A stretch of DNA of 64,000 nt from Podarcis melisellensis (lineage: Eukaryota), in assembly GCA_964234715.1 (NCBI GenBank), contig OZ174281.1; one strand, 5' to 3'. Below, piece after piece: positions 1-37,700 of this stretch. A program made the translations under genes and the position numbers. Numbering within the stretch: the stretch's first letter is position 1; each line of letters opens with the position of its first letter. Under the pieces are notes generated by a model. That model saw only the letters and a list, made by a program, of their open reading frames with translations, was not told where the DNA came from and did no database searches.

Positions 1-1548
1 GATAGTGCCAGTCTCAGAATTAATGGAGAGGAAGGATGAGAGGGGCAGCCCCTCAGTGATGCTGCTGCGAATGGAGTAGGTGATTTGAGCATTCTGATCC
101 ACATCTGGGTCAGAGGCTTTGACCCTGAAAATGGAGGAGCCTGAAGGATTGTTCTCTGGGACATAGGCAGTATAATAGGGTTTCTCAAAGGCAGGGCGGT
201 TGTCATTGATGTCAGAGATCTGCAGTGTGATGGCTTTGTATGTGGAAAGAGGGGGGTTGCCTTTGTCTGTGGCTGTGACTGTGATATTGTACTCTGGAGT
301 TCTTTCTCTGTCCAAGGGGGCATCTGTGAGAAGCTTATAATAATTATTGGAGGCTGATACCATCTTGAATGGCAAATTGTGTTGTAAATCACAAGCAATC
401 TTCCCATTATCTCCAGAGTCTCTATCATTTACATTGATAAGGGCTACCAGGGTTCCTACTGCAGAGTCTTCAAGGATGGGGCTGGATAAAGAGGCAAGAA
501 TCACTTCTGGGGCATTGTCATTCTCATCTAGAAGTATTATTTCAACTTTACAGTGAGCCACTAATCCACCTCCATCTCTTGCTTCCACTGCCATCACATA
601 TCCTTCTGTTTCCTCAAAGTCCAGAACCTCCTTAACTATAATTGTTCCATCTTGTGAACCCAAGTGGAACTTTTGACGAGCACTTTCAGGGATGTTACTA
701 AAACTATAGTTTATCTGGGCATTTGAACCATCATCTCTATCTGTGGCTTTCACCTGGACCACCAATGACCCTTTGGGGGCATTTTCTTTCAGCTTGACCG
801 CGTATATTTTTTGAGTGAAGACTGGTGGGTTGTCATTTGCATCAATGACGGTGATCCATATTTTGGCTGTTCCAGATTTGGCAGGCTTCCCTCCATCCAG
901 TGCCGTAAGGATTAATTGGAAACTGCTTTCACTTTCCCGATCCAACTGTTTATTCAACACTAATTCTGCATATTTCTTTCCGCCTTCTATTTCTCTCACT
1001 TCCAGAATAAAGTATGGATTTGTGCTAAGGTTGTAATCCTGGAGAGAATTCACCCCAAGATCAGGATCTTCAGCTTGTCCAAGGAGAAATGTGGTGCCTT
1101 GTAAAGACAATTCACTTGTCTCCAGCTTGATATCCCCATTTACAAAAAGTGGTGCATTATCATTAATGTCTTGGATCTCTACAGTTATATGAAAAATATT
1201 CATAGGACTTCCAACCACCACTTCAAAATTGATGGAGCAGATTGCAGTTTGACCACATAATTCCTCTCTATCAATCCTTTCCCTTACATACAGATTTCCA
1301 TTTTCTGCACTGAGAGTAAAGTATTGCTTTTTACCTAGGGAAAGGATATGCAGATTGTAATTTCCTATTTCTCCATTATTCAGGCTCAGGTCTTTAGCTA
1401 GGTTTCCCACAATGGAGCCCTTTTCCATTTCCTCAGGGATGGAATAATGAATGTGCTCTGAGCCAATCTGACCACACAGAGAGAATAATAAGAGGAGAGG
1501 TACTTGCCTTCTTAGGGATCTGCTGCTATCTTTCTGTCTGCCGGCCAT
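1..1548 (-). CDS. PCDHGB: Protocadherin gammaB-like variable exon A1 (5' part: signal peptide to EC5; continues past the left window edge)
   Basis: Absent from the ORF track. Hand translation from ATG 1548 gives 516 open codons (MAGRQKDSSRSLRRQVPLLLLF...DINDNAP...LDRE...SINSETGTI). Paralogue of 23309-25711 at offset 24163. Symbol is family-level only. Confidence 0.93.
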   Translation of the reverse strand, partial: MAGRQKDSSRSLRRQVPLLLLFSLCGQIGSEHIHYSIPEEMEKGSIVGNLAKDLSLNNGEIGNYNLHILSLGKKQYFTLSAENGNLYVRERIDREELCGQTAICSINFEVVVGSPMNIFHITVEIQDINDNAPLFVNGDIKLETSELSLQGTTFLLGQAEDPDLGVNSLQDYNLSTNPYFILEVREIEGGKKYAELVLNKQLDRESESSFQLILTALDGGKPAKSGTAKIWITVIDANDNPPVFTQKIYAVKLKENAPKGSLVVQVKATDRDDGSNAQINYSFSNIPESARQKFHLGSQDGTIIVKEVLDFEETEGYVMAVEARDGGGLVAHCKVEIILLDENDNAPEVILASLSSPILEDSAVGTLVALINVNDRDSGDNGKIACDLQHNLPFKMVSASNNYYKLLTDAPLDRERTPEYNITVTATDKGNPPLSTYKAITLQISDINDNRPAFEKPYYTAYVPENNPSGSSIFRVKASDPDVDQNAQITYSIRSSITEGLPLSSFLSINSETGTI

Positions 1549-1802
1549 CCCTCTTGCAGAGAAATGTGTTTTATCCTTTCTTTCTGTGATTAGTTAAATT
1601 GAGGCGTATTAAATCCCATTCACTCTGTAGAAGTGTTCAATAAAGAATCATGAACGAAGTCAGTAGCTGCTGCTGGATTTCTATACTTTGCAGTGGCTTT
1701 GTTCCTGTGTTCTGCTGTTTCCCAGCTCTGTAGTTTGTTCATGAGCAATCAAATTGCAAAAGCATCTGGTAGTGGATTCTCCACTCCTCCATGAGAACTA
1801 TA

Positions 1803-1846
1803 TTGGCCAACAGTGACACTCTGAGTCTTAGATGGGGAACTGCAAG
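1803..1846 (-). promoter_or_regulatory. CSE (CTCF-type promoter element) of A1, CACT variant
   Basis: Minus strand TGCAGTTCCCCATCTAAGACTCAGAGTGTCACTGTTGGCCAA. The same motif recurs at similar distance before all 11 ATGs. Confidence 0.8.
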
Positions 1847-3607
1847 ACGTCTCTTCTCTTTTAAGTAAATAACATACAAGGGATTTCTTGCCATTTTCAA
1901 TCTTACGTACAATAATTCTCAGGTAGAGAATCTTTTGTGGTATGGTAAAAAAATTAGAGTTTGGTCCCTGTGTTTTACATTAGGATAAGCAACAACTCAC
2001 TTTCGTAGCAGCACATTTGGCATTGCTCATGGGGGTGCACTTCAGAGAAACTGAACTGACTGATTAGTGTCCCTGTCTGATAGTACAGTTCTGCAATCAT
2101 ATTTTTCTGACAGTTAGAAACTGTTCATCCATATAGGTACGTGTCAACATATTTAATCACAGGAAGTGGTTCTCAGACCTAATGAATTCTGAGTTTAAAA
2201 GTTATTTTCCCAAAATGTGCAATAAGGCCTTTGGAATCTTTGTGTCACACAAAATTTCCCCTCTAAAGTAACACAGTTCTACTTTCTATTGTACCAACTG
2301 TCTTGCGGGCAATCGTCTCCTCACCTACTTGCCAGTTGATGCACTTAATCAGTTATGTATGTAGCTGTGTTAGTTGACAGTGATTTGGGATACCTGGATA
2401 AATTCCTAATGTTTGGCAAGTTCTTTTTCTTCTCTTAAGGCATTACTTGACTTATGCAACTCAGTCATACAATGAGAACAGCACTAAAAGTACAATGCTT
2501 ACTCAAGATCATGCTACAGTTTTTCTTGGGAACTTGAGTCCTCTCTCCCCACCCCTCAGGCTTTCCGTAGGCTTCCCTCCCTTCCCAGATCACACCCCTC
2601 AACCCCTCACTGGCCTTTTTCATTGCCCTCTTCAGGAGCCTTACTGGCTGCAATGTGTCCTTGAACTAGGATATTGCTGCTTGCCTGGCTGGAGGAGTCA
2701 AAGATCTATAGAAGTGGAGATATTAAAACCTCTGAATTTTGCATGGTTGAAATGTGGTCTATTGTACAAAGGTAAGAGTCACATCAATAAAATATCACGG
2801 TTAGAATGCTAAATAGTGGAATGCTAGATTACGTTGTGGAATACTAAAGCAGCACTTGACAAGGCATCATCTAGCACTGCTATGGCTACCTACATGTCTC
2901 ATAAAATCACTTACTATACTCTTCCCATGATGTAGAGAGAAGGAAAATGTAGTCTAGAAGATTTGGCTCCAATGTGAACACATTATTATGAGTAGAAGAG
3001 GAAAGCATGCAATATATGTTTTAATCCCTTGCATTGTAAATTGGTACACTCAGAGGAGGACTAGAAGATCCGTGTTTATTTTCTGAACTTCCAGATCAGT
3101 ATTGTATTCTTTTGATGAAATTCTGAACAATATGGTGACAGAGTTCAAGTGTGTGTGTCTTCTTCAGAAGTAGAACCTTTACAGTGCGTGCGCATATTGC
3201 TTCGTTCAGTGAATGGGACCTTCATTTAAAAGCTTTCTCAGGATAGAGAGCTGAGCAATATAATACAGCTACTTCTACACTGGAAGAAAGATTAAACACA
3301 AAAGTAACTATTATGGAACAGCTCCTAGTCTTCACCAAAATCACAGGTGTTTGGGACGATAAATGTGCATGCTTGTGTGTGCAGGTGCACACACAAGTGC
3401 CATCCTCAACATTTCTGTGTGTGCACATTCATTTCAGACCTCCTGCATTTGGCACACCTCCTTGGCTGAATTCAGCCCCAAACTATTAGCCTCAGTAACT
3501 TGACATCTACACAAAACATAGCTATGACATAAAATTCAGACAAATCCACAGTCTCTTCATTTGCTAACAGAACTTCTGTAGATAGAATAAATTAGAAGCA
3601 CATGATT

Positions 3608-4640
3608 AACATAAAAATATAAAAAGAGCATGTTGGATCAGGCCAGTGTCCTATTTAGCTCAGAATATTATTTTCCTTGCAGTCAACTGGTTGCCTACAG
3701 GAAGCCCAAAAGTGGGGCCTGAGTGCAACAGCACTCTCCTCACTTCTGATTCCCCACAACTGGTATTCAGAGACATACTATCTCTAACTATGGAGATAGA
3801 ACCTAGACACCATTGCTAGCAGGCCATGAAATAATGTTGTACATGAATGTGTCCATTTCTCTTTTAAAACCAGGTTAGTGGGCATCACTACCTCTCATGG
3901 GAACAAACTCCACAGTTTAACTCAGTGCTGTGTGAAGAAGTATTTTCTGCTGTCTGTCCTGAATCTTCCAACATTCAGTTTCATTGGATGTGTCTTAGTT
4001 TTAGTGTTATGTGGGGAAGGGGACACTTATCCATCCACACTTTCCATACAACGCATAATTATATACACCAATACCGTGTCTTCACTTACTTGCCTTTTCT
4101 GTAAGCTGTATCTAAGTAAACTAAAAGGGTGAATGGCTCCATCCCCTTGCCAATTTGGGTTCATATTTTCCAGCTCCACCTTACCTGTTTTTAGGTAAGT
4201 TGACCAGAACTATACACAGTATTCCAAAATTTATTTTCTTTTTTTCCACAGCTGTCTCATGCTATGTCAACATCTTCATCAAACTGTTCGCTATGACCCC
4301 AAGGTCTCATTCCTGTTTAGTCCCCATAAGCATATAACTGAAACAACAGTTCTTTTAGCCCACTTTACACTTGTTCACATTAAATTGCATTTGCCATTTT
4401 ACTGCCCATTCACTCGGTATGGTTTGGAGAGATCCTTTGCGAGCTCTTTGCAACCCCTTCTTGTTTTAACCACTCTGAACTATTTGGGATTAGCAAACTT
4501 GGCTACATCATGGCTCGCTCCTAATTTTAGATCATTTATGAACAAGTTTAAAAGCTCAATACTGATTCTTGGAGGATCATGCCTTCTACATCTTTCCATA
4601 AGGAGAATCGTCACTTTATTCCTACTCTCCACTTACCAAT
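3608..4640 (-). mobile_element. Degraded CR1-type LINE 3' fragment (duplicate at ~27771-28800)
   Basis: Begins with a reversed squamate CR1-like tail (aacataaaaatataaaaagagcatgttggatcaggccagtg) followed by decayed RT-region sequence. Recognised from memory; boundaries approximate. Confidence 0.6.
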
Positions 4641-4745
4641 CTCCTCTTATTCCATAACTGCTAAAAATAGAATAAAAAATTCTGCAGAAATGTGGGGAAG
4701 GGTTTCAAAGGTGCAATACAAAGAATTCCTAACCATAAAGCTTAC

Positions 4746-7166
4746 CTCTTCATCCTTAGCCTTTTCAGACTGAAAATTGTTTCCACTGTTGCCTGTAAAA
4801 GGCACATCAGGTTTCTCACTGCCAAGAATATTGTCTACCATCTGAACATTGGGTGTCAGGAAGGCAAACTCATTCTTCCTGGTCTCAGAAGACAGACAGA
4901 GCTGGTAGGAATAGGGCAAAGTCCCATCTTCAAAGTTGGGTGGGAAGATGGCACCATTCTTGGAATGGGGAACAGGACCAAAGCACTGTAGGAACCTGGG
5001 ATGCCCTGACTGACGGAGCTTCATTGTAACGGCCAGAATCACAGTCAAGAGGAACAAGAAGGAGATCACAGCTAAGGCCAGCACCAAGTAGAACTGCAGG
5101 TCAGACTGATACTCCGAGCTGTTGGCTTGGCTCTTCATTTCCGGAAGGGCCTCCTGAAAGTTCTCAGCAAACACCAGGTTCAGAGTCATGGTGGCCGAGA
5201 GAGACGGCTGCCCGTTATCCTTCACCATAATGACCAGTCTCTGTTTCACAGCGTCTCTCTCCACAAAGGCCCTGGCGGTCCTGATCTCTCCAGTATGAGA
5301 ACCAACCGTGAAGAGTGCCGGCTCAGTGGCCTGAGTCAGGTGGTAGGAGAGCCAGGCGTTGTGTCCAGAATCTGCATCCACGGCCACCACCTTGGTGACA
5401 AGATAATCTGCCTCGGCCGAACGAGGCACCATCTCAAACAAGGCTGAGCCCTTGGCTTCTTGTGAGGGGGACAGGATACGAGGGCTGTTATCATTCCTGT
5501 CAAACACAAACACCCTGACGGTCACATTGCTGCTGAGAGGGGGAGAACCCCCATCTTGGGCCTTCACTTGCACCCGAAACTCTCTGAATTGTTCATAGTC
5601 AAAGGATCTCTGGGCATAGATGGTGCCGGTCTCTGAATTAATGGAGATATAGGAGGAGATGGGAAGCTCCTCGATGTTGCTGTTGAGTATGGAGTATGTG
5701 ATCCGTGAGTTCTGGTCCATGTCGGAATCAGAGGCTTTGATGGTGAAAATGGAGGCACCTGAAGGATTGTTTTCTGGCACGTAGATGTTGTAGGATGGCT
5801 TCTGAAATGTAGGGGCATTATCATTGATATCTGAGATCTGTAGAGAGATTGTTTTGTGTGTGGAAAGAGGTGGAGTTCCTCTGTCAGTGGCTGTGATTGT
5901 AATATTGTATGCAGGAGCTATTTCTCTGTCCAAAGGACTGTCTGTCTGGAGCTTGAAGTAATTGTTTGATGAGGGAAGAACTTTGAAAGGTAAATCATCT
6001 TGTAAGTAGCAAGTAACTTTTCCATTATCTCCACTATCTTTGTCATTTACATTGATCAGAGCAATGACAGTTCCTGGCAGAGAATCCTCAGGAACAGGGC
6101 TGGACATGGAGGCTAACGTCACTTCTGGGGCATTATCATTCCCATCAAGAACATTTATTTCAATGTTGCAGTGTGTCACTAATCCACCTCCATCCTTTGC
6201 TGCTGCTGTCATAGTATATCTTCTTGTTTCCTCAAAATCCAACATCTGCAGAAGAGAGATTATGCCATCAACTGGATCCAGGCCAAATTTCTTTTGTCCA
6301 TTCACGGGAATGTTGCTGAATTCATATCTGATCTGGGCGTTTAAACCATCATCTTTGTCAGAGGCTACAACTTGGAGCACAAAGGACCCAACAGGAGCTT
6401 CTTCATGCACACTGACCTTGTACACCTCTTGAGTGAAAACAGGTGGGTTGTCATTGGCATCTGTGACATTAATCCATATCTGGGCAGTCCCAGTTTTTCT
6501 GGGTTCACCCCCATCCAAGGCTGTAAGGATCAAGTGAAAAGAGTACTCGCTTTCCCGATCCAAAGATTTCTGCAGCACCAATTCTGCATTTTTATTTCCA
6601 TCTTCCATTTCTCTAACTTCCAAAGTGAAGTACTGATTGGAGCTTAACTGGTAATTCTGGAGGGAATTCATTCCAATGTCAGGATCTTCAGCTTTCCCAA
6701 GGAGAAAGCGGGCCCCAGGTAAAGTGGATTCAATTATATCCAAGTTGATGTTATCATTGGGAAACAGTGGTGCATTATCATTAATGTCCTGAATTGCTAT
6801 AGTTAAATGGAAGATATTTAGGGGATTTTCAACCACCACTTCAAAATTTACTACGCAAATGGGAGTTATGTCACATAGCTGCTCCCTATCTATTCTGTCA
6901 CTTACATAGAGGTTTCCATTCTCTGCATTAATACTGAAATACTGCATTTTCTTCAAAGAGACAGCATGCAGATTGCGCTTTGCAAGATCTCTTGTATTCA
7001 ATCCCAAATCCTTGGCAATATTCCCCACAATCGAACCCTTTGCCATCTCCTCAGGGATAGAATAACGAATCTGCTCTGAGGCAGCCCAGCAGGAAGGCGA
7101 CAAAAGTAAGAGAAGCAGTACTTGCCTTCTGAGCGCTCTGCCATTGTCTTTGTGCCTTCTGTCCAT
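4746..7166 (-). CDS. PCDHGB: Protocadherin gammaB-like variable exon B1 (807 codons)
   Basis: Six cadherin repeats (PE, LDRE, DxNDNxP), TM, cytoplasmic [11 protein letters not shown]. True ATG at 7166 (track starts at an upstream TTG). Donor GAG|GTAAG at 4746/4745, phase 0; unspliced ORF runs to 4647. Confidence 0.95.
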
Positions 7167-7414
7167 CTGGCTGTACAACAAATTAGCTGCTTCCTTTTGC
7201 AGATCAGATCAAAGGCCCACCAAGGTGCAGGATCACCATAAGGAAAAATAAGCTGCCTTTCTTCTTAATGTTTATAGAAAGTAGCTGAATTTTCTTTTCC
7301 TTTCTAGCAGGATTGCTCTGTCTTTGTGATGTGCTGCTTGTCCAACTTACACAGCAATGATTAAACAGTTGCTCCTTAGGAAACACTTTTCTCTTATCAG
7401 TCTGGCTGCCACAC

Positions 7415-7457
7415 TGGCCAACAGTGACACCCTGAGGCTCAGATGGAGAACTACAAG
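7415..7457 (-). promoter_or_regulatory. CSE of B1, CACT variant
   Basis: TGTAGTTCTCCATCTGAGCCTCAGGGTGTCACTGTTGGCCA, about 255 bp upstream of ATG. Confidence 0.8.
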
Positions 7458-8299
7458 GGCTTTTGTTCTCATTTACTGTAGTTGAAAATAGAACAGCAGT
7501 TTGGGTATTAGATTTTGGAATGTGAAGGAGAAACATCCCAGTGCTAAGAGCTGTTCAGCAATGGAGCTGCTTTGCTGCAGTTATTCAAGCAGAGCCTGGA
7601 CAGTCATATATTGGGGATTCTCTCTTTCCTGCAGGGCTTGGCACTGGGGTGGGAATCTCCTCTGATATGATTCTGTGTTTCTCCAAGTGCGATTTTCCTG
7701 GTATACAAGGATCTGCTTCCACAATTTATGCTCCAGCATTTCTTTTTTCCTTTCTCTTTTTGAATTACCTCTTCAGCGGCTTTTACTTTAAGGGGTTTTA
7801 CTACAGTGACTGTTGCACTGTTTTGTCTGGAAATAATTTGTACTAAAAGAGAAACTTGAATAAGCTTCATAGAATGGAAACCAGAACTACGGCACTGATA
7901 TCCCAGCATTGATGTACCACTGATCTTATTTTGCATTTCCCTGATAGAAACACTGATATCTGTGATTTCTGCTTTGATGCCAAAGATATAATCTCAAAAT
8001 GTAACAGATAATTTTACCCAACCACAGATCTCTTGCTTTTTTCAGTTTTATTAGAAGGGATATTTCCCCCAAATAATTCAGAATAAACCTATGAGTTGAC
8101 AGTGATCTCAGCTGTCCTATAGAACACAAACATAAACCAAAGTGTGTCAAACGAAAACAAAACAAACACAGATAGGGTTTTTTAGTGTTTGATTAGAAAC
8201 CAGAGCTTTTGCTCTCCTATTCTTGTTAGTTTCTTCCTTCCTCCTAAAAAACAACATTGGCTTTGAGAAAGAAAAGGTGTTAGCAGGTGACAGGAGGAT

Positions 8300-8980
8300 T
8301 CCTTGACTGTGGAATTCTGGTCACCTGGGCCTCTAGTGACAAATATTGATATAGTAGCACCCCCAGACTATGAACCTGCTCTTTCAGGAGGACCCCAGTT
8401 ATCCAGCCTCAGGGACAGCCACTCAAAGCTCCTCTGTCTTGCCAGGATTCAGAGTTTTGTTGGCCATCATTCAGGTGAACACTAAGCCTAGGCACTAGTC
8501 TAGGGCTTGCACAACCGCTTCTGATTTAGAAGTTACAGAGAAGTAGAGCTTAGCATCATCAGCATGCTGATGACACATTGCCCCAAATTTCTCAATGACT
8601 GTCTCCAGAGGCTTCATATATAGATGTCAAACAGCACTGAAGACAAAATGGTACCCTGTGGCACCCACCAGCTCAACTGCCAGCGGGCTCAAAGACAATC
8701 ACCCAAGGCTGTTTTCAGAAACCAACTCTGTTTAACCATTGTTAAACAGTGTCTCCAGTACCCATCCCATTAAGTCAGTTCAGAAAGATATAAAGGTAAT
8801 TGTGTCAAAAGCCACTGAGAAATCAGGTAAGGTTAACAGGATCATATTTCCTCTGTACTTCCCCTAGTAAAGATCACCCATCAGAGTGACAAAGGTCAAT
8901 TCAGACCCACAACCAAGGCCTGAAAGCAGATTGAAATGGGTCAAGATGATCTGTTTTGTTCAAGAGTACTTGTACTGTAT
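8300..8980 (-). mobile_element. Degraded L2-clade LINE reverse-transcriptase fragment (duplicate at ~32470-33140)
   Basis: Minus strand reads VPQGTILSSVLFDIY/MKPLETVIEKFGAMCHQHADDAKLY, matching the non-LTR RT PQG...YADD motifs, with a frameshift. Confidence 0.75.
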
Positions 8981-9658
8981 CGTCACTTCTGACATTGTGG
9001 CTCCTTGTGATATTCAAGTCAACTAGCATTTACAATGTTATCCTAAAGCAAATCTTTGAAAGATAGGTATGTATCCCTCAGTCAGCATTCCTCCTCCCCT
9101 TTCCCTACTCCATCCCAACACCAAAGCACATTAGTCCCCCCCCCACCTATATTTTATGGATAAGAACAAATCAGTGTGCCTTCTTGACATCATTTCCAGG
9201 ATTTAATGATCCCCCGTAGCATTATTTCATGGGCAATATTAGATTCACTTACTGTGCGCTACAAAGGTTTCCCCTTCTCAAACACTAGATACCATGGGTG
9301 GTATCCAGTGCTCTAGACCCAAGTAGAGCTAAATAGTATCTACATTATTCAATTCCACATATTATACAAAATCTATATGCTACACCATGTTAAACAGAGA
9401 ATTATGTAGATCCTATGGGAAGCAAATTTGCTATAAAGGACATATCAAAATTGCACCTATTGCACAACTATTTCGGAAGAAATAATACTGAACTAATCCC
9501 AGGATTTGTACCCCAAAATGAGTAAATAGTGGGGATAATTCTTGATTCATCAAAGATAGATCTATCAGTCCCGACATTCTTTGGTTTTTGTCTTTATCTG
9601 TGATTGAGTCCCCTGAACTTCAAAAAGCATGTCACATTTATACCAGCTGTAGAAATTA

Positions 9659-9899
9659 CAGTGGTACCTCAGGTTACAGATGCTTCAGGTTACATACACT
9701 TCAGGTTACAGACTCTGCTAACCCAGAAATATTACTTCGGGTTAAGAACCTTGCTTCAGGATGAGAACAGAAATCTTGCAGCGGCGGCACACGGCAGCAG
9801 GATGCCCTATTAGCTAAAGTGGTGCTTCAGGTTAAGAACAGTTTCAGGTTAGGAACAGACCTCCGGAACGAATTATGTTCTCAACCTGAGGTACCACTG
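9659..9899. mobile_element. Tc1/mariner(pogo)-type MITE
   Basis: Perfect 17-bp TIRs CAGTGGTACCTCAGGTT / AACCTGAGGTACCACTG flanked by TA duplications; internal repeats of TTCAGGTTA. Confidence 0.88.
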
Positions 9900-10262
9900 T
9901 ACGGCACAAAAGAAGACATTAGTTGGAAAAGGGAATAATTACACTTATTTGACTGACTGGATTTTAATTTATAGTCCAATGCTCTAGATTATTAATCTTG
10001 TATGATTAATTTTGTTGTACTGGTATGTCTTATGTTTAAGATTATTTAAATTTCCTTATTGTTTTGTACCATTTCCTATGTCAACTTGGGCTATGTGGAT
10101 TTTATATGGAAGTGGTAATTCACTTTGCCTTTCCTTATATTAAAAGTTTCCTTTCATTACTCTCAATACATTGCCATGGTCTGTGACTATAACAATGCAT
10201 TCATTCATGACAGGCCAAGGAGTGAGCTTAGGACTAGTGATGTTCCAGTTCAAAAAGCAGAA

Positions 10263-10435
10263 AGGTCATAGCTCAGTGGTAGAGAATCTGCTTTTCCTTC
10301 AAAAGGTTCAAAGTTCAATCCTCAGAATCTTGAGGTAGGAAAGCGAAGGTCTTCTGTTTGAAGACCTGGAGAGCTGTTGCTAGTTAGTGTGGACAGTACT
10401 GAGCTTGATGGACCAAGAGTGTCAGTAATCTCGAG
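10263..10435 (+). mobile_element. Old tRNA-derived SINE, Squam3-like (duplicate at ~34437-34610)
   Basis: A-box TAGCTCAGTGG, B-box GTTCAATCC, then body CCTGGAGAGCTGTTGCTAGTTAGTGTGGACAGTACTGAGC. Confidence 0.7.
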
Positions 10436-13800: not shown

Positions 13801-13843
13801 TGGTCAACAGTGGCACTCTGAGTCTCAGATGAGGAACTGCAAG
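13801..13843 (-). promoter_or_regulatory. CSE of C1, CACT variant
   Basis: TGCAGTTCCTCATCTGAGACTCAGAGTGCCACTGTTGACCA. Confidence 0.8.
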
Positions 13844-15981: not shown

Positions 15982-15984
15982 TGT

Positions 15985-16050: not shown

Positions 16051-16052
<2 letters not shown>

Positions 16053-25965: not shown

Positions 25966-26009
25966 TTGGCCAACAGTGACACTCTGAGTCTTAGATGGGG
26001 AACTGCAAG
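25966..26009 (-). promoter_or_regulatory. CSE of A2, CACT variant
   Basis: Identical to the A1 element. Confidence 0.8.
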
Positions 26010-28908
26010 ACGTCTCTTCTCTTTTAAGTAAATAACATACAAGGGATTTCTTGCCATTTTCAATCTTACGTACAATAATTCTCAGGTAGAGAATCTTTTG
26101 TGGTATGGTAAAAAAATTAGAGTTTGGTCCCTGTGTTTTACATTAGGATAAGCAACAACTCACTTTCGTAGCAGCACATTTGGCATTGCTCATGGGGGTG
26201 CACTTCAGAGAAACTGAACTGACTGATTAGTGTCCCTGTCTGATAGTACAGTTCTGCAATCATATTTTTCTGACAGTTAGAAACTGTTCATCCATATAGG
26301 TACGTGTCAACATATTTAATCACAGGAAGTGGTTCTCAGACCTAATGAATTCTGAGTTTAAAAGTTATTTTCCCAAAATGTGCAATAAGGCCTTTGGAAT
26401 CTTTGTGTCACACAAAATTTCCCCTCTAAAGTAACACAGTTCTACTTTCTATTGTACCAACTGTCTTGCGGGCAATCGTCTCCTCACCTACTTGCCAGTT
26501 GATGCACTTAATCAGTTATGTATGTAGCTGTGTTAGTTGACAGTGATTTGGGATACCTGGATAAATTCCTAATGTTTGGCAAGTTCTTTTTCTTCTCTTA
26601 AGGCATTACTTGACTTATGCAACTCAGTCATACAATGAGAACAGCACTAAAAGTACAATGCTTACTCAAGATCATGCTACAGTTTTTCTTGGGAACTTGA
26701 GTCCTCTCTCCCCACCCCTCAGGCTTTCCGTAGGCTTCCCTCCCTTCCCAGATCACACCCCTCAACCCCTCACTGGCCTTTTTCATTGCCCTCTTCAGGA
26801 GCCTTACTGGCTGCAATGTGTCCTTGAACTAGGATATTGCTGCTTGCCTGGCTGGAGGAGTCAAAGATCTATAGAAGTGGAGATATTAAAACCTCTGAAT
26901 TTTGCATGGTTGAAATGTGGTCTATTGTACAAAGGTAAGAGTCACATCAATAAAATATCACGGTTAGAATGCTAAACAGTGGAATGCTAGATTACGTTGT
27001 GGAATACTAAAGCAGCACTTGACAAGGCATCATCTAGCACTGCTATGGCTACCTACATGTCTCATAAAATCACTTACTATACTCTTCCCATGATGTAGAG
27101 AGAAGGAAAATGTAGTCTAGAAGATTTGGCTCCAATGTGAACACATTATTATGAGTAGAAGAGGAAAGCATGCAATATATGTTTTAATCCCTTGCATTGT
27201 AAATTGGTACACTCAGAGGAGGACTAGAAGATCCGTGTTTATTTTCTGAACTTCCAGATCAGTATTGTATTCTTTTGATGAAATTCTGAACAATATGGTG
27301 ACATAGTTCAAGTGTGTGTGTCTTCTTCAGAAGTAGAACCTTTACAGTGCATGCGCATATTGCTTCATTCAGTGAATGGGACCTTCATTTAAAAGCTTTC
27401 TCAGGATAGAGAGCTGAGCAATATAATGCAGCTACTTCTACACTGGAAGAAAGATTAAACACAAAAGTAACTATTTTGGAACAGCTCCTAGTCTTCACCA
27501 AAATCACAGGTGTTTGGGACGATAAATGTGCATGCTTGTGTGTGCAGGTGCACACACAAGTGCCATCCTCAACATTTCTGTGTGTGCACATTCATTTCAG
27601 ACCTCCTGCATTTGGCACACCTCCTTGGCTGAATTCAGCCCCAAACTATTAGCCTCAGTAACTTGACATCTACACAAAACATAGCTATGACATAAAATTC
27701 AGACAAATCCACAGTCTCTTCATTTGCTAACAGAACTTCTGTAGATAGAATAAATTAGAAGCACATGATTAACATAAAAATATAAAAAGAGCATGTTGGA
27801 TCAGGCCAGTGTCCTATTTAGCTCAGAATATTATTTTCCTTGCAGTCAACTGGTTGCCTACAGGAAGCCCAAAAGTGGGGCCTGAGTGCAACAGCACTCT
27901 CCTCACTTCTGATTCCCCACAACTGGTATTCAGAGACATACTATCTCTAACTATGGAGATAGAACCTAGACACCATTGCTAGCAGGCCATGAAATAATGT
28001 TGTACATGAATGTGTCCATTTCTCTTTTAAAACCAGGTTAGTGGGCATCACTACCTCTCATGGGAACAAACTCCACAGTTTAACTCAGTGCTGTGTGAAG
28101 AAGTATTTTCTGCTGTCTGTCCTGAATCTTCCAACATTCAGTTTCATTGGATGTGTCTTAGTTTTAGTGTTATGTGGGGAAGGGGGCACTTATCCATCCA
28201 CACTTTCCATACAACGCATAATTATATACACCAATACCGTGTCTTCACTTACTTGCCTTTTCTGTAAGCTGTATCTAAGTAAACTAAAAGGGTGAATGGC
28301 TCCATCCCCTTGCCAATTTGGGTTCATATTTTCCAGCTCCACCTTACCTGTTTTTAGGTAAGTTGACCAGAACTATACACAGTATTCCAAAATTTATTTT
28401 CTTTTTTTCCACAGCTGTCTCATGCTATGTCAACATCTTCATCAAACTGTTTGCTATGACCCCAAGATCTCATTCCTGTTTAATCCCCATAAGCATATAA
28501 ATGAAACAACAGTTCTTTTAGCCCACTTTACACTTGTTCACATTAAATTGCATTTGCCATTTTACTGCCCATTCACTCGGCATGGTTTGGAGAGATCCTT
28601 TGCGAGCTCTTTGCAACCCCTTCTTGTTTTAACCACTCTGAACTATTTGGGATTAGCAAACTTGGCTACATCATGGCTCGCTCCTAATTTTAGATCATTT
28701 ATGAACAAGTTTAAAAGCTCAATACTGATTCTTGGAGGATCATGCCTTCTACATCTTTCCATAAGGAGAATCGTCACTTTATTCCTACTCTCCACTTACC
28801 AATCTCCTCTTATTCCATAACTGCTAAAAATAGAATAAAAAATTCTGCAGAAATGTGGGGAAGAGTATCAAAGGTGCAATACAAAGTATTCCTAACCATA
28901 AAGCTTAC

Positions 28909-31329
28909 CTCTTCATCCTTAGCCTTTTCAGACAGAAAATCGTTTCCACTGTTGCCTGTAAATGGCGCAGCAGGTTTTTCACTGCCAATAATATTGTCTA
29001 CCATCTGAACACTGGGTGTCAGGAAGGCAAACTCATTCTTCCTGGTCTCAGAAGACAGACACAGCTGGTAGGAATAGGGCAAAGTCCCATCTTCAAAGTT
29101 GGGTGGGAAGATGGCACCATTCTTGGAATGGGGAACAGGGCCAAAGCACTGTAGGAACCTGGGATGCCCTGATTGACGGAGCTTCATTGTAACGGCCAGA
29201 ATCACAGTCAAGAGGAACAAGAAGGAGATCACAGCTAAGGCCAGCACCAAGTAGAACTGCAGGTCAGACTGATACTCCGAGCTGTTGGCTTGGCTCTTCA
29301 TTTCCGGAAGGGCCTCCTGAAAGTTCTCAGCAAACACCAGGTTCAGAGTCATGGTGGCCGAGAGAGACGGCTGCCCGTTATCCTTCACCATAATGACCAG
29401 TCTCTGTTTCACAGCATCTTTCTCCACAAAGGCCCTGGCTGTCCTGATCTCTCCAGTATGAGAACCAACCGTGAAGAGTGCCGGCTCAGTGGCCTGAGTC
29501 AGGTGGTAGGAGAGCCAGGCGTTGTGTCCAGAATCTGCATCCACGGCCACCACCTTGGTGACAAGATAATCTGCCTCGGCCGAACGAGGCACCATCTCAA
29601 ACAAGGCTGAGCCCTTGGCTTCTTGTGAGGGGGACAGGATACGAGGGCTGTTATCATTCCTGTCAAGAACAAACACCCTGACGCTCACATTGCTGCTGAG
29701 AGGGGGAGAACCCCCATCTTGGGCCTTCACTTGCACCCGAAACTCTCTGAATTGTTCATAGTCAAAGGATCTCTGGGCATAGATGGTGCCGGTCTCTGAA
29801 TTAATGGAGATATAGGAGGAGATGGGAAGCTCCTCGATGTTGCTGTTGAGTATGGAGTATGTGATCCGTGAGTTCTGGTCCATGTCGGGATCAGAGGCTT
29901 TGATGGTGAAAATGGAGGCACCTGAAGGATTGTTTTCTGGCACATAGATGTTGTAGGATGGCTTCTGAAAGGTAGGGGCATTATCATTGATATCTGAGAT
30001 CTGGAGAGAGATTGTTTTGTGTGTGGAAAGAGGCGGAGTTCCTCTGTCAGTGGCTGTGATTGTAATATTATATGCAGGAACTATTTCTCTGTCCAATGGA
30101 CTGTCTGTCTGGAGTTTGAAGTAATTATTAGATGAGGGAAGAATTTTGAAGGGTAAACCATCTTGTAAGTAGCAAGTAACCTTTCCATTATCACCACTAT
30201 CTTTGTCATTTACATTGATCAGAGCAATGACAGTTCCTGGCAGAGAATCCTCAGGAACTGGGCTGAACATGGAGGCTAACGTCACTTCTGGGGCATTATC
30301 ATTCCCATCAAGAACATTTATTTCAATGTTGCAGTGTGTCACCAATCCACCTCCATCCTTTGCTGCTGCTGTCATAGTATATCTTCTTGTTTCCTCAAAA
30401 TCCAACATCTGCAGAAGGGAGATTATGCCATCAACTGGATCCAGGCCAAATTTCTTTTGTCCATTCACTGGAATGTTGCTGAATTCATATCTGATCTGGG
30501 CGTTTAAACCATCATCTTTGTCAGAGGCTACAACTTGGAGCACAAAGGACCCAACAGGAGCTTCTTCATGCACACTGACCTTGTACACCTCTTGAGTGAA
30601 GACTGGTGGGTTGTCATTGGCATCTGTGACATTAATCCATATCTGGGCAGTCCCCGTTTTTCTGGGTTCCCCCCCATCCAAGGCTGTAAGGGACAAGTGA
30701 AGAGCGTGCTCACTTTCCCGATCCAAAGATTTCTGCAACACCAGTTCTGCATTTTTACTTCCATCTTCCATTTCTCTAACTTCCAAAGTGAAGTACCGAT
30801 TGGTGCTCAACTGGTAATTCTGGAGGGAATTCATCCCAATGTCAGGATCTTCAGCTTTCCCAAGGAGAAATCGTGCGCCTGGTACAGTAAGTTCACTTGT
30901 CTCCAAGTTGATGTTGCCATTGGGAAACAGTGGTGCATTATCATTAATGTCCTGAATTGCTATAGTTAAATGGAAGATATTGAGGGGATTTTCAACTACC
31001 ACTTCAAAATTTACTACGCAAATGGGAGTTATGTCACATAGCTGCTCCCTATCTATTCTGTCACTTACATAGAGGTTTCCATTCTCTGCATTAATACTGA
31101 AAAACTGCATTTTGTTCACAAAGACAGCATGCAGATTGCGCTTTGCAAGATCTCTTGTATTCAGTCCCAAATCCTTGGCCAGATTCCCCACAATCGAACC
31201 CTTTGCCATCTCTTCAGGGATAGAATAACGAATCTGCTCTGAGGCAGCCCAGCAGGAAGGCGACAAAAGTAAGAGAAGCAGTACTTGCCTTCTGAGTGCT
31301 CTGCCATTGTCGTCGTGTCTTCTGTCCAT
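28909..31329 (-). CDS. PCDHGB: Protocadherin gammaB-like variable exon B2 (807 codons)
   Basis: Duplicate of B1 (offset 24163). Donor GAG|GTAAG at 28909/28908; unspliced ORF to 28810. Confidence 0.95.
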
Positions 31330-31577
31330 CTGGCTTTACAACAAATTAGCTGCTTCCTTTTGCAAATCAGATCAAAGGCCCATCAAGGTGCAGGATCACC
31401 ATAAGGAAAAATAAGCTGCCTTTCTTCTTAATCTTTATAGAAAGTAGCTGAATTTTCTTTTCCTTTCTAGCAGGATTGCTCTGTCTTTGTGATGTGCTGC
31501 TTGTCCAACTTACACAGCAATGATTAAACAGTTGCTCCTTAGGAAACACTTTTCTCTTATCAGTCTGGCTGCCACAC

Positions 31578-31620
31578 TGGTCAACAGTGACACCCTGAGG
31601 CTCAGATGGAGAACTACAAG
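31578..31620 (-). promoter_or_regulatory. CSE of B2, CACT variant
   Basis: Matches the B1 element with one substitution. Confidence 0.8.
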
Positions 31621-33832
31621 GGCTTTTGTTCTCATTTACTGTAGTTGAAAATAGAACAGCAGTTTGGGTATTAGATTTTGGAATGTGAAGGAGAAACATC
31701 CCAGTGCTAAGAGCTGTTCAGCAATGGAGCTGCTTTGCTGCAGTTATTCAAGCAGAGCCTGGACAGTCATATATTGGGGATTCTCTCTTTCCTGCAGGGC
31801 TTGGCACTGGGGTGGGAATCTCCTCTGATATGATTCTGTGTTTCTCCAAGTGCGATTTTCCTGGCATACAAGGATCTGCTTCCACAATTTATGCTCCAGC
31901 ATTTCTTTTTTCCTTTCTCTTTTTGAATTACCTCTTCAGCGGCTTTTACTTTAAGGGGTTTTACTACAGTGACTGTTGCACTGTTTTGTCTGGAAATAAT
32001 TTGTACTAAAAGAGAAACTTGAATAAGCTTCATAGAATGGAAACCAGAACTACGGCACTGATATCCCAGCATTGATGTACCAATGATCTTATTTTGCATT
32101 TCCCTGATAGAAACACTGATATCTATGATTTCTGCTTTGATGCCAAAGATATAATCTCAAAATGTAACAGATAATTTTACCCAACCACAGATCTCTTGCT
32201 TTTTTTCAGTTTTATTAGAAGGGATATTTCCCCCAAATAATTCAGAATAAACCTATGAGTTGACAGTGATCTCAGCTGTCCTATAGAACACAAACATAAA
32301 CCAAAGTGTGTCAAACGAAAACAAAACAAACACAGATAGGGTTTTTTAGTGTTTGATTAGAAACCAGAGCTTTTGCTCTCCTATTCTTGTTAGTTTCTTC
32401 CTTCCTCCTAAAAAACAACATTGGCTTTGAGAAAGAAAAGGTGTTAGCAGGTGACAGGAGGATTCCTTGACTGTGGAATTCTGGTCACCTGGGCCTCTAG
32501 TGACAAATATTGATATAGTAGCACCCCCAGACTATGAACCTGCTCTTTCAGGAGGACCCTAGTTATCCAGCCTCAGGGACAGCCACTCAAAGCTCCTCTG
32601 TCTTGCCAGGATTCAGAGTTTTGTTGGCCATCATTCAGGTGAACACTAAGCCTAGGCACTAGTCCAGGGCTTGCACAACCGCTTCTGATTCAGAAGTTAC
32701 AGAGAAGTAGAGCTCAGCATCATCAGCATGCTGATGACGCATTGCCCCAAATTTCTCAATGACTGTCTCCAGAGGCTTCATATATAGATGTCAAACAGCA
32801 CTGAAGACAAAATGGTACCCCGTGGCACCCACCAGCACAACTGCCAGAGGGCTCAAAGACAATCACCCAAGGCTGTTTTCAGAAACCAACTCTGTTTAAC
32901 CATTGTTAAACAGTGTCTCCAGTACCCATCCCATTAAGTCAGTTCAGAAAGATATAAAGGTAATTGTGTCAAAAGCCACTGAGAAATCAGGTAAGGTTAA
33001 CAGGATCATACTTCCTCTGTACTTCTCCTAGTAAATATCACCCATCAGAGTTACAAAGGTCAATTCAGACCCATAACCAAGGCCTGAAAGCAGATTGAAA
33101 TGGGTCAAGATAATCTGTTTTGTTCAAGAGTACTTGTATCGTCACTTCTGACATTGTGGTCTGACATTGTGGCTCCTTGTGATATTCAAGTCAACTAGCA
33201 TTTACAATGTTATCCTAAAGCAAATCTTTGAAAGATAGGTATGTATCCCTCAGTCAGCATTCCTCCTCCCCTTTCCCTACTCCATCCCAACACCAGAGCA
33301 CATTAGTTCCCCCCCCCACCTATATTTTATGGATAAGAACAAATCAGTGTGCCTTCTTGACATCATTTCCAGGATTTAATGATCCCCCGTAGCATTATTT
33401 CATGGGCAATATTAGATTCACTTACTGTGCGCTACAAAGGTTTCCCCTTCTCAAACACTAGATACCATGGGTGGTATCCAGTGCTCTAGACCCAAGTAGA
33501 GCTAAATAGTATCTACATTATTCAATTCCACATATTATACAAAATCTATATGCTACACCATGTTAAACAGAGAATTATGTAGATCCTATGGGAAGCAAAT
33601 TTGCTATAAAGGACATATCAAGAATTGCACCTATTGCACAACTATTTCGGAAGAAATAATACTGAACTAATCCCAGGATTTGTACCCCAAAATGAGTAAA
33701 TAGTGGGGATAATTCTTGATTCATCAAAGATAGATCTATCAGTCCCAACATTCTTTGGTTTTTGTCTTTATCTGTGATTGAGTCCCCTGAACTTCAAAAA
33801 GCATGTCACATTTATACCAGCTGTAGAAATTA

Positions 33833-34073
33833 CAGTGGTACCTCAGGTTACAGATGCTTCAGGTTACATACGCTTCAGGTTACAGACTCTGCTAACCCAG
33901 AAATATTACTTCGGGTTAAGAACCTTGCTTCAGGATGAGAACAGAAATCTTGCAGCGGCGGCACACGGCAGCAGGATGCCCTATTAGCTAAAGTGGTGCT
34001 TCAGGTTAAGAACAGTTTCAGGTTAGGAACAGACCTCCGGAACGAATTATGTTCTCAACCTGAGGTACCACTG
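33833..34073. mobile_element. Tc1/mariner-type MITE (segmental duplicate of 9659-9899)
   Basis: Same TIRs, TA TSD and flanks. Confidence 0.88.
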
Positions 34074-35279
34074 TACGGCACAAAAGAAGACATTAGTTGG
34101 AAAAGGGAATAATTACACTTATTTGACTGACTGGATTTTAATTTATAGTCCAATGCTCTAGATTATTAATCTTGTATGATTAATTTTGTTGTACTGGTAT
34201 GTCTTATGTTTAAGATTATTTAAATTTCCTTATTGTTTTGTACCATTTCCTATGTCAACTTGGGCTATGTGGATTTTATATGGAAGTGGTAATTCACTTT
34301 GCCTTTCCTTATATTAAAAGTTTCCTTTCATTACTCTCAATACATTGCCATGGTCTGTGACTATAACAATGCATTCATTCATGACAGGCCAAGGAGTGAG
34401 CTTAGGACTAGTGATGTTCCAGTTCAAAAAGCAGAAAGGTCATAGCTCAGTGGTAGAGAATCTGCTTTTCCTTCAAAAGGTTCAAAGTTCAATCCTCAGA
34501 ATCTTGAGGTAGGAAAGCGAAGGTCTTCTGTTTGAAGACCTGGAGAGCTGTTGCTAGTTAGTGTGGACAGTACTGAGCTTGATGGACCAAGAGGGTCAGT
34601 AGTCTCGAGGGAACCTCCAGTTTTACAGAAGTACAAAAAAAAAAGAAGGCAAAACCCAAACTGACCAAAGACAGCAAAGCATGCTCAGTAGAAACACAAT
34701 GCTCAGTGCCTGTTGGAGCAGAAAAATATAAAACAGGGGAGGAGAAGGAATGGGATATTATGGAAAAAGCTCGCTGAAACCAGACCCCACTTGTTACTCT
34801 GTAACATTAAAAGCACAAAAAATATTCAGTAAAGACCTCCAAAATTTCAGCTAAAGTTCTGAAGCAAGTTTGCAAACTTACAAATTGCATACACCTCGTC
34901 CCTTACATATGCCAAGAGACCCCACCATTTGCAGCATTGTGTTGGTTCTATAGGGACATTCAGCTGAATTCATGAAGATCAAGATTAGGAAAAGAGGGTA
35001 AAGGGAATACAAATATCCAAAAGGGAATCAGAGGGAATGAAATAATTAATTAAACTATATTACCTGTATATATACGAAGATGAAAGAGTAAACAGATTAT
35101 TATAATATACTTTCAAATATTCAATCTCAGTAAAAAAAAATTGCACCAATTGTGTAGCAGCAAATACTGCTCAAAAGAAAACTCTCTGAGATGAGTGAGC
35201 TTAAAATATATTAGTACTCTATTGATATGCAGGGAATGCAGAATCTGTTCACCATGTTCTGTTGAAAAAAACAACTCAC

Positions 35280-37700
35280 CATATCAGCTCTATCCATCTC
35301 AGAAATTAGGATATTGCCTCCATTGGCAGTCAAAGGTGCATCAGACTGAGTGTTGCATGAAACATTCCCTGCAGTTTGAAGATTGGGTGTTGGAAAGGTG
35401 AACTCCTGTACCCTGGACTCAGAAGATAAGCACAGCTGATAGGAATACGGCAATGTTCCTTCTTCATAGTTTGGTGGGAAAATGACTGTGTTGTTTGAAT
35501 GGGGAACAGGAGCAAAACACTGCAGGAATTTGGGGTTTCCTGATCGCCGAATCTTCATGAGAATGGCCAGAATCACTGTCAGGAGGAATAAGAAGGAGAT
35601 CAAAGCTAAGGCCAGCACCAAGAAGAATTGTAGATCCGATTGATACTCAGAGTCACTGGGCTGGTGGCTAATTTCTGGAAGTGCCTCCTGGAAGTTCTCA
35701 GCAAACACCAGGTTGAGACTCACGGTAGCAGATAGTGGTAGCTGCCCATTATCCTTGACTAAGATGATGAGCTTCTGCTTCACGGCATCTCTTTCCAGAA
35801 AAGCCCGTGAGGTCCTGATCTCCCCAGTATGGGAACCAATTGAGAACAGCCCAGGTTCTGTTGCCTGGAGCAGATAGTAGGAGAGCCAAGCGTTGTGTCC
35901 AGAGTCAGCATCTACAGCCACCACCTTGGTCACCAGATAACCCTCCTCTGCTGAGCGAGGCACCATCTCAAACAAGGAGGAGCCCTCTACTCCTTGAGAA
36001 GGGTAAAGAATCTGAGGGCTTTGGTCATTCTGATCCAGAATACACAGTCTCACGGTGGCATTGCTGCTGAGGCGGGGGGAGCCTCCATCTTCGGCCCTCA
36101 CCTCCACTTGAAACTCCCTGACTTGCTCATAGTCAAAGGAGCGCTGAGCATAGATAGTGCCAGTCTCAGAATTAATGGAGAGGAAGGATGAGAGAGGCAG
36201 CCCCTCAGTGATGCTGTTGCGAATGGAGTAGGTGATTTGAGCATTCTGGTCCACATCTGGGTCGGAGGCTCTGACCCTGAAAATGGAGGAGCCTGAAGGA
36301 TTGTTCTCTGGGACATAGGCAGTATAATAGGGTTTCTCAAAGGCAGGGCAGTTGTCATTGATGTCAGAGATCTGCAGTGTGATGGTTTTGTATGTGGAAA
36401 GAGGGGGGTTGCCTTTGTCTGTGGCTGTGACTGTGATATTGTACTCTGGAGTTCTTTCTCTGTCCAAGGGGGCGTCTGTAAGAAGCTTATAATAATTATT
36501 GGAGGCTGATACCATCTTGAATGGCAAATTGTGTTGTAAATCACAAGCAATCTTCCCATTGTCTCCAGAGTCTCTATCATTTACATTGATAAGGGCTACC
36601 AGGGTTCCTACTGCAGAGTCTTCAGGGATTGGGCTGGATAAAGACGCCAGAATCACTTCTGGGGCATTGTCATTCTCATCTAGGAGTGAAATTTCAACTT
36701 TACAGTGAGCCACTAATCCACCTCCATCTCTTGCTTCTACTGCCATCACATATCCTTCTGTTTCCTCAAAGTCCAGAGCCTCCTTAAGTGTTATTGTCCC
36801 TTCTTGTGGATCCAAGTAGAATTTCTGGTGAGCAATTTCAGGGATGTTACTAAAATTATAGTTGATGTGAGCATAAGAACCGTCATCTCTATCTGTGGCT
36901 TTCACCTGGACCACTGAAGACCCTTTGGGGGCATTTTCTTTCAGCTTGACTGAGTATACTTTTTGAGTGAAGACTGGTGGGTTGTCATTTGCATCAATGA
37001 CGGTGATCCATATTTTGGCTGTTCCAGTTTTGGCAGGCTTCCCTCCATCCAGCGCCGTTAGGGTTAATTGGAAATTGCTTTCACTTTCCCGATCCAACTG
37101 TTTATTCAATACTAATTCTGCATATTTCTTTCCATCTTCTATTTCTCTCACTTCCAGAATAAAATACTGATTTGAGCTAAGGTGGTAATTCTGGAGAGAA
37201 TTCACCCCAAGATCAGGATCTTCAGCTTGTCCAAGGAGAAATGTGGTGCCTTTTAAAGAGGATTCACTTATCTCCAGCTTTATATCCCCTTTTACAAAAT
37301 ATGGTGCATTATCGTTAATGTCTTGGATCTCTACAGTTATATGAAAAATATTCATAGGGCTGTCAAGCACCACTTCAAAATTGATGGAGCAGATTGCAGT
37401 TTGACCACATAATTCCTCTCTATCAATCCTCTCCCTTACATACAAATTCCCATTTTCTGCACTGAGAGTGAAATATTGTTTTTTACCTAGGGAAAGGATA
37501 TGCAGATTGCCATTTCCTATTTCTCCATTATTCAATCTCAGGTCTTTGGCTAGGTTTCCTACAATGGATCCCTTTTCCATTTCTTCAGGGATGGAATAAT
37601 GAATGTGCTCTGAGACAATCTGACCACACAGAGAGAATAATAGGAGGAGAGGTACTTGCCTTCTGAGGGATCTGCTGTTTTCCTTCTGCCTATCTTCCAT
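35280..37700 (-). CDS. PCDHGB: Protocadherin gammaB-like variable exon C2 (807 codons)
   Basis: Duplicate of C1. Donor ATG|GTGAGT at 35280/35279; unspliced ORF to 35211. Confidence 0.95.

Follow-up and report, generated by a model that had tools for sequence, protein, structure and literature searches.

Short-patch exchange as the probable source of criss-cross mosaicism among gamma-B-like protocadherin variable exons of Podarcis melisellensis

The question raised by a 64,000-nucleotide stretch of Podarcis melisellensis DNA (contig OZ174281.1, assembly GCA_964234715.1; called the window below) is how variable exons of a clustered-protocadherin array can be paired in one way by their position and in another by the variants they carry. 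A block of about 24.16 kb is present twice in the window, as D2-C2-B2-A2-D1-C1-B1-A1, and synteny pairs exon A1 with A2 and C1 with C2; this pairing, made earlier in a sequence-only reading, is correct according to the alignment at the 24.16-kb offset. The same reading had noticed that at several separate sites A1 groups instead with C2 and A2 with C1, and had ascribed this to repeated post-duplication gene conversion, in particular between C1 and A2, the inner genes. The comparisons reported here suggest that short-patch exchange among fast-turning-over gamma-B-like variable exons probably re-assorts an old variant pool, with no special exchange between A2 and C1. The elements concerned are as follows, EC being an extracellular cadherin repeat and ORF an open reading frame.

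1 to 1548, minus strand: A1, a gamma-B-like protocadherin variable exon truncated by the window start, with its first 516 codons, from the signal peptide to EC5, present; from ORF and translation.
11041 to 13521, minus strand: C1, complete variable-exon ORF of 827 codons; Pfam Cadherin_2, Cadherin x5 and Cadherin_C_2.
23282 to 25711, minus strand: A2, complete variable-exon ORF of 810 codons, Pfam-supported.
35214 to 37700, minus strand: C2, complete variable-exon ORF of 829 codons.
1 to 18900, no strand given: repeat unit 1 (A1-B1-C1-D1), from self-BLAST and unit alignment; probably continues to the left of the window.
24164 to 43008, no strand given: repeat unit 2 (A2-B2-C2-D2), colinear with the single unit of Podarcis lilfordi and Lacerta agilis.

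The motif groupings that gave rise to the question were all found again. The EC1 motif is TAIC in A1 (codon starting at 1248) and C2 (37400) and TAFC in C1 (13221) and A2 (25411); the EC1-2 linker reads DINDN in A1 and C2 and DINDH in C1 and A2, the latter form being carried also by the A orthologues of P. raffonei and P. lilfordi. The same division holds for ENAPKG (A1, C2) versus ENTPKG (C1, A2) in EC3 and for CDLQHNLPF (A1, C2) versus CDIQHTLPF (C1, A2) in EC4. The ETSEL patch at the start of EC2 pairs A1 with C1, as had been said, and ETSEL is additionally present in D1 and B2.

Site patterns were counted over the 1548 codon-aligned columns common to A1, A2, C1 and C2. The tree-consistent split A1A2/C1C2 is followed by 35 sites, the criss-cross split A1C2/A2C1 by 11 and the other incompatible split A1C1/A2C2 by 9, while one gene stands against three at 18, 20, 25 and 32 sites and 6 sites are multi-state. 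The criss-cross sites lie in columns 60, 306, 383, 390, 768, 885, 1160, 1161, 1171, 1184 and 1511, which in A2 are, in the same order, positions 25651, 25405, 25328, 25321, 24943, 24826, 24551, 24550, 24540, 24527 and 24200. The criss-cross pattern is thus confirmed, yet it is not privileged over the other incompatible split (11 versus 9). Three patches are referred to repeatedly below.

24527 to 24551, minus strand: EC4 criss-cross cluster of A2 (CDIQHT type), columns 1160-1184, four sites in 25 bases; counterparts A1 364-388, C1 12337-12361, C2 36516-36540.
25321 to 25328, minus strand: EC1-2 linker criss-cross sites of A2 (DINDH), columns 383 and 390; counterparts A1 1158-1165, C1 13131-13138, C2 37310-37317.
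25271 to 25292, minus strand: start-of-EC2 patch of A2, with the split A1C1/A2C2; ETSEL type in A1 (1108-1129) and C1 (13081-13102), I-x-E-S type in A2 and C2 (37260-37281).

A simulation without recombination on the tree ((A1,A2),(C1,C2)), run with generous branch lengths, gamma shapes from 100 to 0.2 and 5000 replicates, yielded a mean of 0.4-1.4 sites per incompatible class and a maximum of 7; the probability of 11 or more was 0, and a total of 20 was never reached. The informative sites therefore fit no single tree without recombination, 20 incompatible sites having been observed against about 1-3 expected. Transversions account for 12 of the 20, and only one is at a CpG. The pairwise homoplasy index (PHI) test also gave a recombination signal, with p=0.0015 for the four genes and p≤0.0005 when the A and C orthologues of P. 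lilfordi and L. agilis were added, and the site patterns were found to be clustered into tracts (66 adjacent same-pattern pairs versus 23.6±4.4 after shuffling, p≤1e-4). The excess of incompatible sites, the PHI signal, the clustering and the transversions together make it well supported that recombination-like exchange among the exons is real. That the exchange is non-allelic and takes place among paralogues, as previously proposed, agrees with the excess homoplasy, the PHI result, the pattern clustering and an exon genealogy discordant with that of its flanks. Excess incompatible sites, clustering into tracts and a stretch whose genealogy differs from its surroundings are marks of interlocus gene conversion; a supported donor-acceptor tract for A2-C1 or A1-C2 was not found by a Sawyer-type run test.

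The proposal that conversion after the 24-kb duplication mainly linked C1 and A2, the inner genes lying about 12 kb apart, did not hold up in the same comparisons. These two are the closest A/C neighbours across the unit boundary, and when polarity was set with orthologue DNA taken from mis-fused gene models of P. lilfordi (L001) and L. agilis (L002), P. raffonei being used for gene order only, A2 and C1 were found to have derived states in common at columns 60, 383, 768 and 885. But A1 and C2, about 35 kb apart, likewise have derived states in common, at columns 306, 1161 and 1171, and the other incompatible split is about equally frequent. Coding differences number 89 for A2-C1, 89 for A1-C1, 94 for A1-C2 and 98 for A2-C2, so that A2 is no closer to C1 than A1 is. 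In the run test neither A2-C1 (best tract p=0.19) nor A1-C2 (best tract p=0.21) reached significance; the strongest tract between the families within this genome joins A1 and C1 (columns 448-558, p=0.018) next to the ETSEL patch, and an A-C tract of P. lilfordi stands out at p=0.001. Sites at which A2 and C1 differ lie within 10-60 bases of the criss-cross sites, and the A2/C1 'derived' states TAFC, DINDH, ENTPKG and CDIQHT already exist in paralogues of other species. An expected count was obtained arithmetically by letting old A/C differences be flipped independently in single copies, at rates taken from the three-versus-one sites. It amounts to about 18 sites per incompatible type with four-way DNA counts that include about 300 bp upstream (88 tree-consistent; 21, 21, 34 and 42 three-versus-one), and coding-only counts would give about 28. 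Since the observed 11 and 9 are below either value, no special A2-C1 link is needed, and a mainly C1-A2 exchange must be considered improbable. The criss-cross shape is the expected by-product of general reticulation and not the trace of a special mechanism.

The variants concerned form a pool that is shared well beyond the four genes. The pooled dimorphisms are TAIC/TAFC, DINDN/DINDH, ENAPKG/ENTPKG, CDLQHN/CDIQHT, ETSEL versus I-x-E-S, and LPGTTFLIGE versus L(K/Q)GTTFLLGQ; combined in many ways, they recur among the A/C-like paralogues of P. raffonei, P. muralis, P. lilfordi, Zootoca and L. agilis, and all four pairings of TAIC/TAFC with DINDN/DINDH are seen among other lacertid paralogues. 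Their presence in paralogues of other species means that the variants predate the 24-kb duplication. A private patch of A2 (columns 419-471) matches the type of P. muralis X5 and P. raffonei X19, a type that the window does not contain, which implies donors beyond the four genes; C1 likewise has a private patch (columns 940-1001). In a tree of EC1-4, A1 groups with P. muralis X4 (95/90) and A2 with P. raffonei X21 and P. lilfordi A (98/92), and A1 and A2 do not come together. The earlier description of the exchange as post-duplication consequently stands only in part: the variants themselves are older than the duplication, donors outside the four genes are needed, and a strictly post-duplication timing is doubtful. 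The term 'combinatorial ectodomains', on the other hand, is a fair description.

The second interleaved family of the repeat shows a pattern of the same kind. Its four exons have 11 criss-cross sites of their own (B1D2/B2D1), six of them in the same start-of-EC2 patch, which lies at 6711-6753 in B1, 30874-30916 in B2, 18429-18471 in D1 and 42537-42579 in D2, with ETSEL in B2 and D1. The leucine codon of ETSEL is TTG in A1 and C1, CTT in B2 and CTA in D1.

4650 to 7166, minus strand: B1, variable exon, member of the interleaved B/D quartet.
16266 to 18884 (stop 16263-16265), minus strand: D1, variable exon of the B/D quartet.
28813 to 31329, minus strand: B2, variable exon of the B/D quartet.
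40374 to 42992, minus strand: D2, variable exon of the B/D quartet.

The most striking number of this analysis, and the part of it most worth following up, is the discordance between exons and spacers. The spacers differ between the units by 0.44% (A-B) and 0.74% (B-C), and the same spacers differ from those of P. lilfordi by 3.5-4.6%; EC1-EC4 differ between the units by 4.1% in A, 4.75% in B, 6.2% in C and 12.7% in D. Synonymous divergence (dS) of EC1-4 between the units is 0.12 for A, 0.13 for B, 0.15 for C and 0.40 for D, the ratio of nonsynonymous to synonymous divergence (dN/dS) being 0.19-0.27. Such ratios, together with abundant silent differences, rule out diversifying selection on point mutations as the source of the exon excess. 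Both states were found elsewhere in the panel for 33 of the 63 A1/A2 differences. Homology between A and C and between B and D, seen as self-BLAST matches at a 12-kb offset, stops at the exon plus about 300 bases of promoter, which explains why imports are confined to the exons. In the 3' part A and C of L. agilis differ by 2.72%, and A2 differs from A of L. agilis by 4.28%; dS is 0.046-0.054 in the 3' half versus 0.16-0.20 in EC1-4. At columns 1160 and 1184, A and C have species-specific synonymous states in common in both outgroup species. The part from EC5 to the cytoplasmic segment is thus under classic concerted evolution, paralogues within a species being closer to each other than orthologues are.

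Tandem repetition of the approximately 24-kb D-C-B-A block took place in this lineage. Positions 1-18900 align with 24164-43008 at the 24.16-kb offset, the syntenic location holds a single D-C-B-A unit in P. lilfordi and L. agilis, and P. raffonei has a different number of such gene dyads. The repeat is two-layered: leftward from the middle of the C exon it is young, and the switch lies inside the C exon near 12270-12345. Beyond it, 12271-16124 and 36430-40259 (5' half of C, C promoter and C-D spacer) are 5-6% apart, unit 1 being the copy that departs from P. lilfordi. D1 with its promoter (16266-19217) is a chimera: identity to D2 reaches 98.7% over the 3' 1.1 kb, but the 5' 1.5 kb (17351-18884) is just about 87% identical to D2 and to D of L. 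agilis, and the promoter (18885-19217) resembles those of B and not that of D2; neither the 5' 1.5 kb nor the promoter is orthologous to D. The structure of D1 suggests unequal crossovers inside the homogenised part of the exons. That D1 derives in part from gene Y, which lies downstream in other lacertids, was considered and ruled out, the 5' half of D1 being just 81-87% identical to Y. An assembly gap adjoins this exon.

16125 to 16253, no strand given: assembly gap (run of N) in intron or spacer sequence, 10 bases 3' of the D1 ORF stop (16263-16265).

The gap lies outside A1, C1, A2 and C2, and its flanks are colinear with the D2 copy (14670-16124 with 38811-40259 and 16254-18900 with 40362-43008), where the corresponding interval measures 102 bases. 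Contig depth was tried as a measure of the copy number of the 24-kb block and abandoned, as no simple copy model fits: in run X15, contigs unique to A2 have a depth of about 130 versus 129 for a spacer contig present in two copies.

Some features of the spacers may be recorded here. A dispersed repeat of about 340 bases occurs at 15191-15529, 21488-21841, 22250-22591 and 39337-39671, with 83-87% identity between copies, and is present in the P. lilfordi and L. agilis loci as well. Apart from it, the D1-A2 spacer (18900-23281) is without counterpart in the spacer between A and the next gene of P. lilfordi or L. agilis, and downstream of A the homology with P. lilfordi ends at about 23301.

The assignment of letters to A2 was compared with contigs from three runs (X15, X16 and X17) of one sample, probably the source of the assembly, and from a second individual labelled as the same organism; the comparison covered 24150-25750 at a likeness of at least 99%. 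Exact contigs of 65-500 bases tie the criss-cross letters to A2-diagnostic neighbours at 8 of the 11 sites, the second individual included. A piece covering 25491-25676 contains site 25651 with A2-specific neighbours; one from the second individual (25338-25441) carries TAFC (site 25405) on an A-type background; 24796-24870 includes site 24826 and reproduces exactly the assembled mixture of A-type and C-type letters; and pieces of 479-500 bases from both samples (24150-24628/24649) contain the CDIQHT cluster 24551-24527 together with 24200. The private patch of A2 was confirmed by a piece of the second individual at 25210-25277. Two stretches were left without a contig of this likeness in the four runs.

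24906 to 24959, no strand given: A2 stretch without a contig of at least 99% likeness (site 24943).
25284 to 25337, no strand given: the same (sites 25321 and 25328).

The predicted A2-unique unitigs 24899-25007 (109 bases) and 25210-25367 (158 bases) were likewise not recovered at 99% or more in the four runs; with this filter a single mismatch drops a contig of 60-100 bases, and little weight attaches to the uncovered stretches. In run X17 one contig has the A1 letter at 24260 and a C-type letter at 24485 and is otherwise A2, which could represent a paralogue-switching contig or a further copy or allele.

The mechanism that would account for these observations is mostly inferred. Short-tract non-allelic (interlocus) gene conversion would move patches of tens to a few hundred bases between members of the family, possibly joined by unequal crossovers inside the homogenised 3' half. 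Within the EC5-EC6-transmembrane-cytoplasmic DNA such conversion would homogenise the paralogues, which is concerted evolution in its classic form, and within EC1-EC4 it would re-assort a common old pool of small variants, leaving each copy a different mosaic. A criss-cross site could then arise by two conversions of opposite direction acting on the same old A/C difference in different copies, or by the copying of one variant into one A and one C. The donors would include genes outside the four, and probably outside the window.

Several observations weigh against this explanation. No single tract of a criss-cross pair is significant, and conversion is therefore deduced from the aggregate signal. 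Of the A1/A2 differences, 15 are private to one copy and 15 to the other, versus about 2-3 expected from the spacer divergence, so that their donors would be unseen. A very high rate of conversion is implied after a duplication just 0.4-0.7% old. The 5' half of C1, its promoter and the C-D spacer are 5-6% from those of C2, whence C1 and C2 are not simply young duplicates. Contig depth did not establish the copy number of the 24-kb block, and sites 24943, 25321 and 25328 have no contig of the required likeness in any of the four runs. To these is added an alternative timing, an older duplication whose spacers were later homogenised, which appears unlikely and is considered next.

According to this alternative the units date back at least to the split from P. 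lilfordi, and long-tract conversion or unequal crossover has recently made their spacers alike. Such an age would suit the divergence of A1 from A2 in EC1-4 (4.6%), which is at least as large as that of either copy from A of P. lilfordi (3.3% and 4.2%), the closer relation of A1 and of A2 to genes of other Podarcis species than to each other, the 5-6% divergence of 12271-16124 between the units, and the variable number of gene dyads among lacertids. EC1-EC4 would have escaped, either through having diverged too far by then or through selection for their difference, and this part, too, seems to us rather unlikely. The single D-C-B-A unit at the syntenic place in P. lilfordi and L. agilis speaks against an old duplication; homogenisation would need to halt at the limits of EC1-4 in each of two exons (A and B), and exchange among paralogues would still be required for the 20 incompatible sites. 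Even so, this timing is less improbable than an assembly artefact, by which variants were placed in the wrong paralogue, or a haplotype was falsely duplicated to give the 24-kb repeat, with A1 and A2 as alleles.

The chance of such an artefact is small. The window has two N gaps, the spacer divergence of 0.4-0.7% is within the range of heterozygosity, the two A2-unique unitigs were missed, and the run X17 contig indicates that short-read contigs can switch paralogue here. But the junction of the repeat (18900-24164) is free of gaps, the promoter and 5' half of D1 differ from those of D2 as expected for a paralogue and not for an allele, and the same combinations of variants occur in independently assembled genomes of other lacertids; the exact contigs at 8 of 11 sites argue in the same direction, and the unrecovered unitigs count for little under the 99% filter. 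That the same residues changed in parallel by point mutation, or converged under selection, without transfer of DNA is hardly credible. The differing leucine codons of ETSEL hint at convergence or at an old transfer between A/C and B/D, and several criss-cross sites are isolated single changes. However, fewer than 1.5 such sites are expected even under strong rate heterogeneity, versus the 20 observed; 8 of the 20 are at third codon positions, four of these within multi-site clusters, the cluster at columns 1160-1184 contains two synonymous sites among its four, and dN/dS is about 0.25. The proportion of transversions and the single CpG site point the same way.

The identity of the array as clustered protocadherins is clear from its composition. 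The window contains 11 long ORFs (804-895 codons, apart from the truncated A1), all on the minus strand and spaced by 5-7 kb, in the order A1, B1, C1, D1, A2, B2, C2, D2 and then three more distant exons. Each is matched by Pfam Cadherin_2, Cadherin in 5-6 stretches (E about 1e-79 to 1e-91) and Cadherin_C_2, and has the form of a single exon of about 2.4 kb with a signal peptide, six cadherin repeats, a transmembrane segment and a short cytoplasmic segment. The exons are tandem same-strand paralogues, with about 300 bases upstream, the putative promoter, conserved between them. Identities are about 91% for A versus C, 86% for B versus D and 74% for A/C versus B/D, and 96% for A1 versus A2. The nearest annotated proteins are the gamma-B5-like and gamma-B1-like isoforms of lacertids (P. 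raffonei 96%, Zootoca 93-94%, P. muralis 91-96%), the closest to A2 being P. raffonei gamma-B5-like X21 with 96%; none among the matches listed is identical. A GTAAGT donor follows ...ADM in C1 and C2, as read from the translation. The annotated orthologues carry Cadherin_tail and span 150-190 kb, and the window itself is without constant exons.

46623 to 49121, minus strand: E, a more distant exon beyond D2.

A second gap, of 128 N, lies at 46142-46269, just 3' of exon E and away from the finding. E and G form a further pair of paralogues (46815-49121 versus 57958-60262, 81% identical) with F between them, and in L. agilis an orthologue of E is located upstream of D. The B orthologue of P. 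lilfordi (L001:9973-11805) has an open frame of just 611 codons and may be a pseudogene or reflect a sequence error.

Neurons owe their self-recognition codes to the clustered protocadherins, whose homophilic specificity is set by EC1-EC4. Gene conversion is established in these clusters and, in the passages of PMC2764143, PMC1852091 and PMC4978886 that refer to Noonan et al. 2004 (Genome Res 14:354), is described as a homogenisation of EC4-EC6. EC1-EC3 are treated as conversion-free, a region that 'does not undergo gene conversion' (PMC1852091, a fugu study) or 'appear not to be subject of gene conversion' (PMC4978886), and serve as such as a marker for phylogeny (PMC1852091, PMC2764143, PMC4978886). 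For the gamma-b family of the anole, conversion was reported to be rare (Jiang et al. 2009, PMC2764143). The lacertid array resembles that family in having grown by lineage-specific tandem duplication within squamates, its exons matching anole isoforms at 72-75%, and differs from it in the positive recombination tests and in a 3' half with dS of 0.05 versus 0.16-0.20 in EC1-4. With known protocadherin conversion it has in common the tandem same-strand exons, the limitation of exchange to exon homology and a 3' half (EC5-EC6-transmembrane-cytoplasmic) homogenised within species; unlike it, the lizard locus swaps short patches inside EC1-EC4, diversifying rather than homogenising them. The locus fits the known process in its 3' half and appears to add a short-tract, diversity-preserving exchange inside EC1-EC4.

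In the genes of the major histocompatibility complex (MHC) classes I and II, in the killer-cell immunoglobulin-like receptors (KIR) and in the pseudogene conversion of chicken immunoglobulin V genes (Ig V), micro-conversion shuffles polymorphic motifs among paralogues. The likeness to these systems lies in short tracts that re-assort standing motifs, in reticulate phylogenies and in motifs common across genes and species; the difference is that the exchange described here belongs to the germline and concerns genes of neuronal self-recognition. The lizard exons gave no evidence of balancing or diversifying selection (dN/dS about 0.2-0.27).

It may be asked whether short-tract germline conversion in the lacertid gamma-B-like genes is a generator of diversity in EC1-EC4, re-assorting an ancient pool of micro-patches across genes and species. 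We advance this only tentatively, and with no more assurance its corollary that such conversion would proceed some 20-30 times as fast as point substitution, as estimated from dS versus spacer divergence, and that new duplicates would gain distinct ectodomains almost at once. If true, it would contradict the usual statement that EC1-EC3 escape conversion. Should the exchange of patches in EC1-EC4 be this frequent, EC1-3 trees of recent paralogues can mislead, as in the case of A1 and A2, each of which groups with a gene of another species, and new isoform specificities could come from re-assortment and not from slow point mutation.

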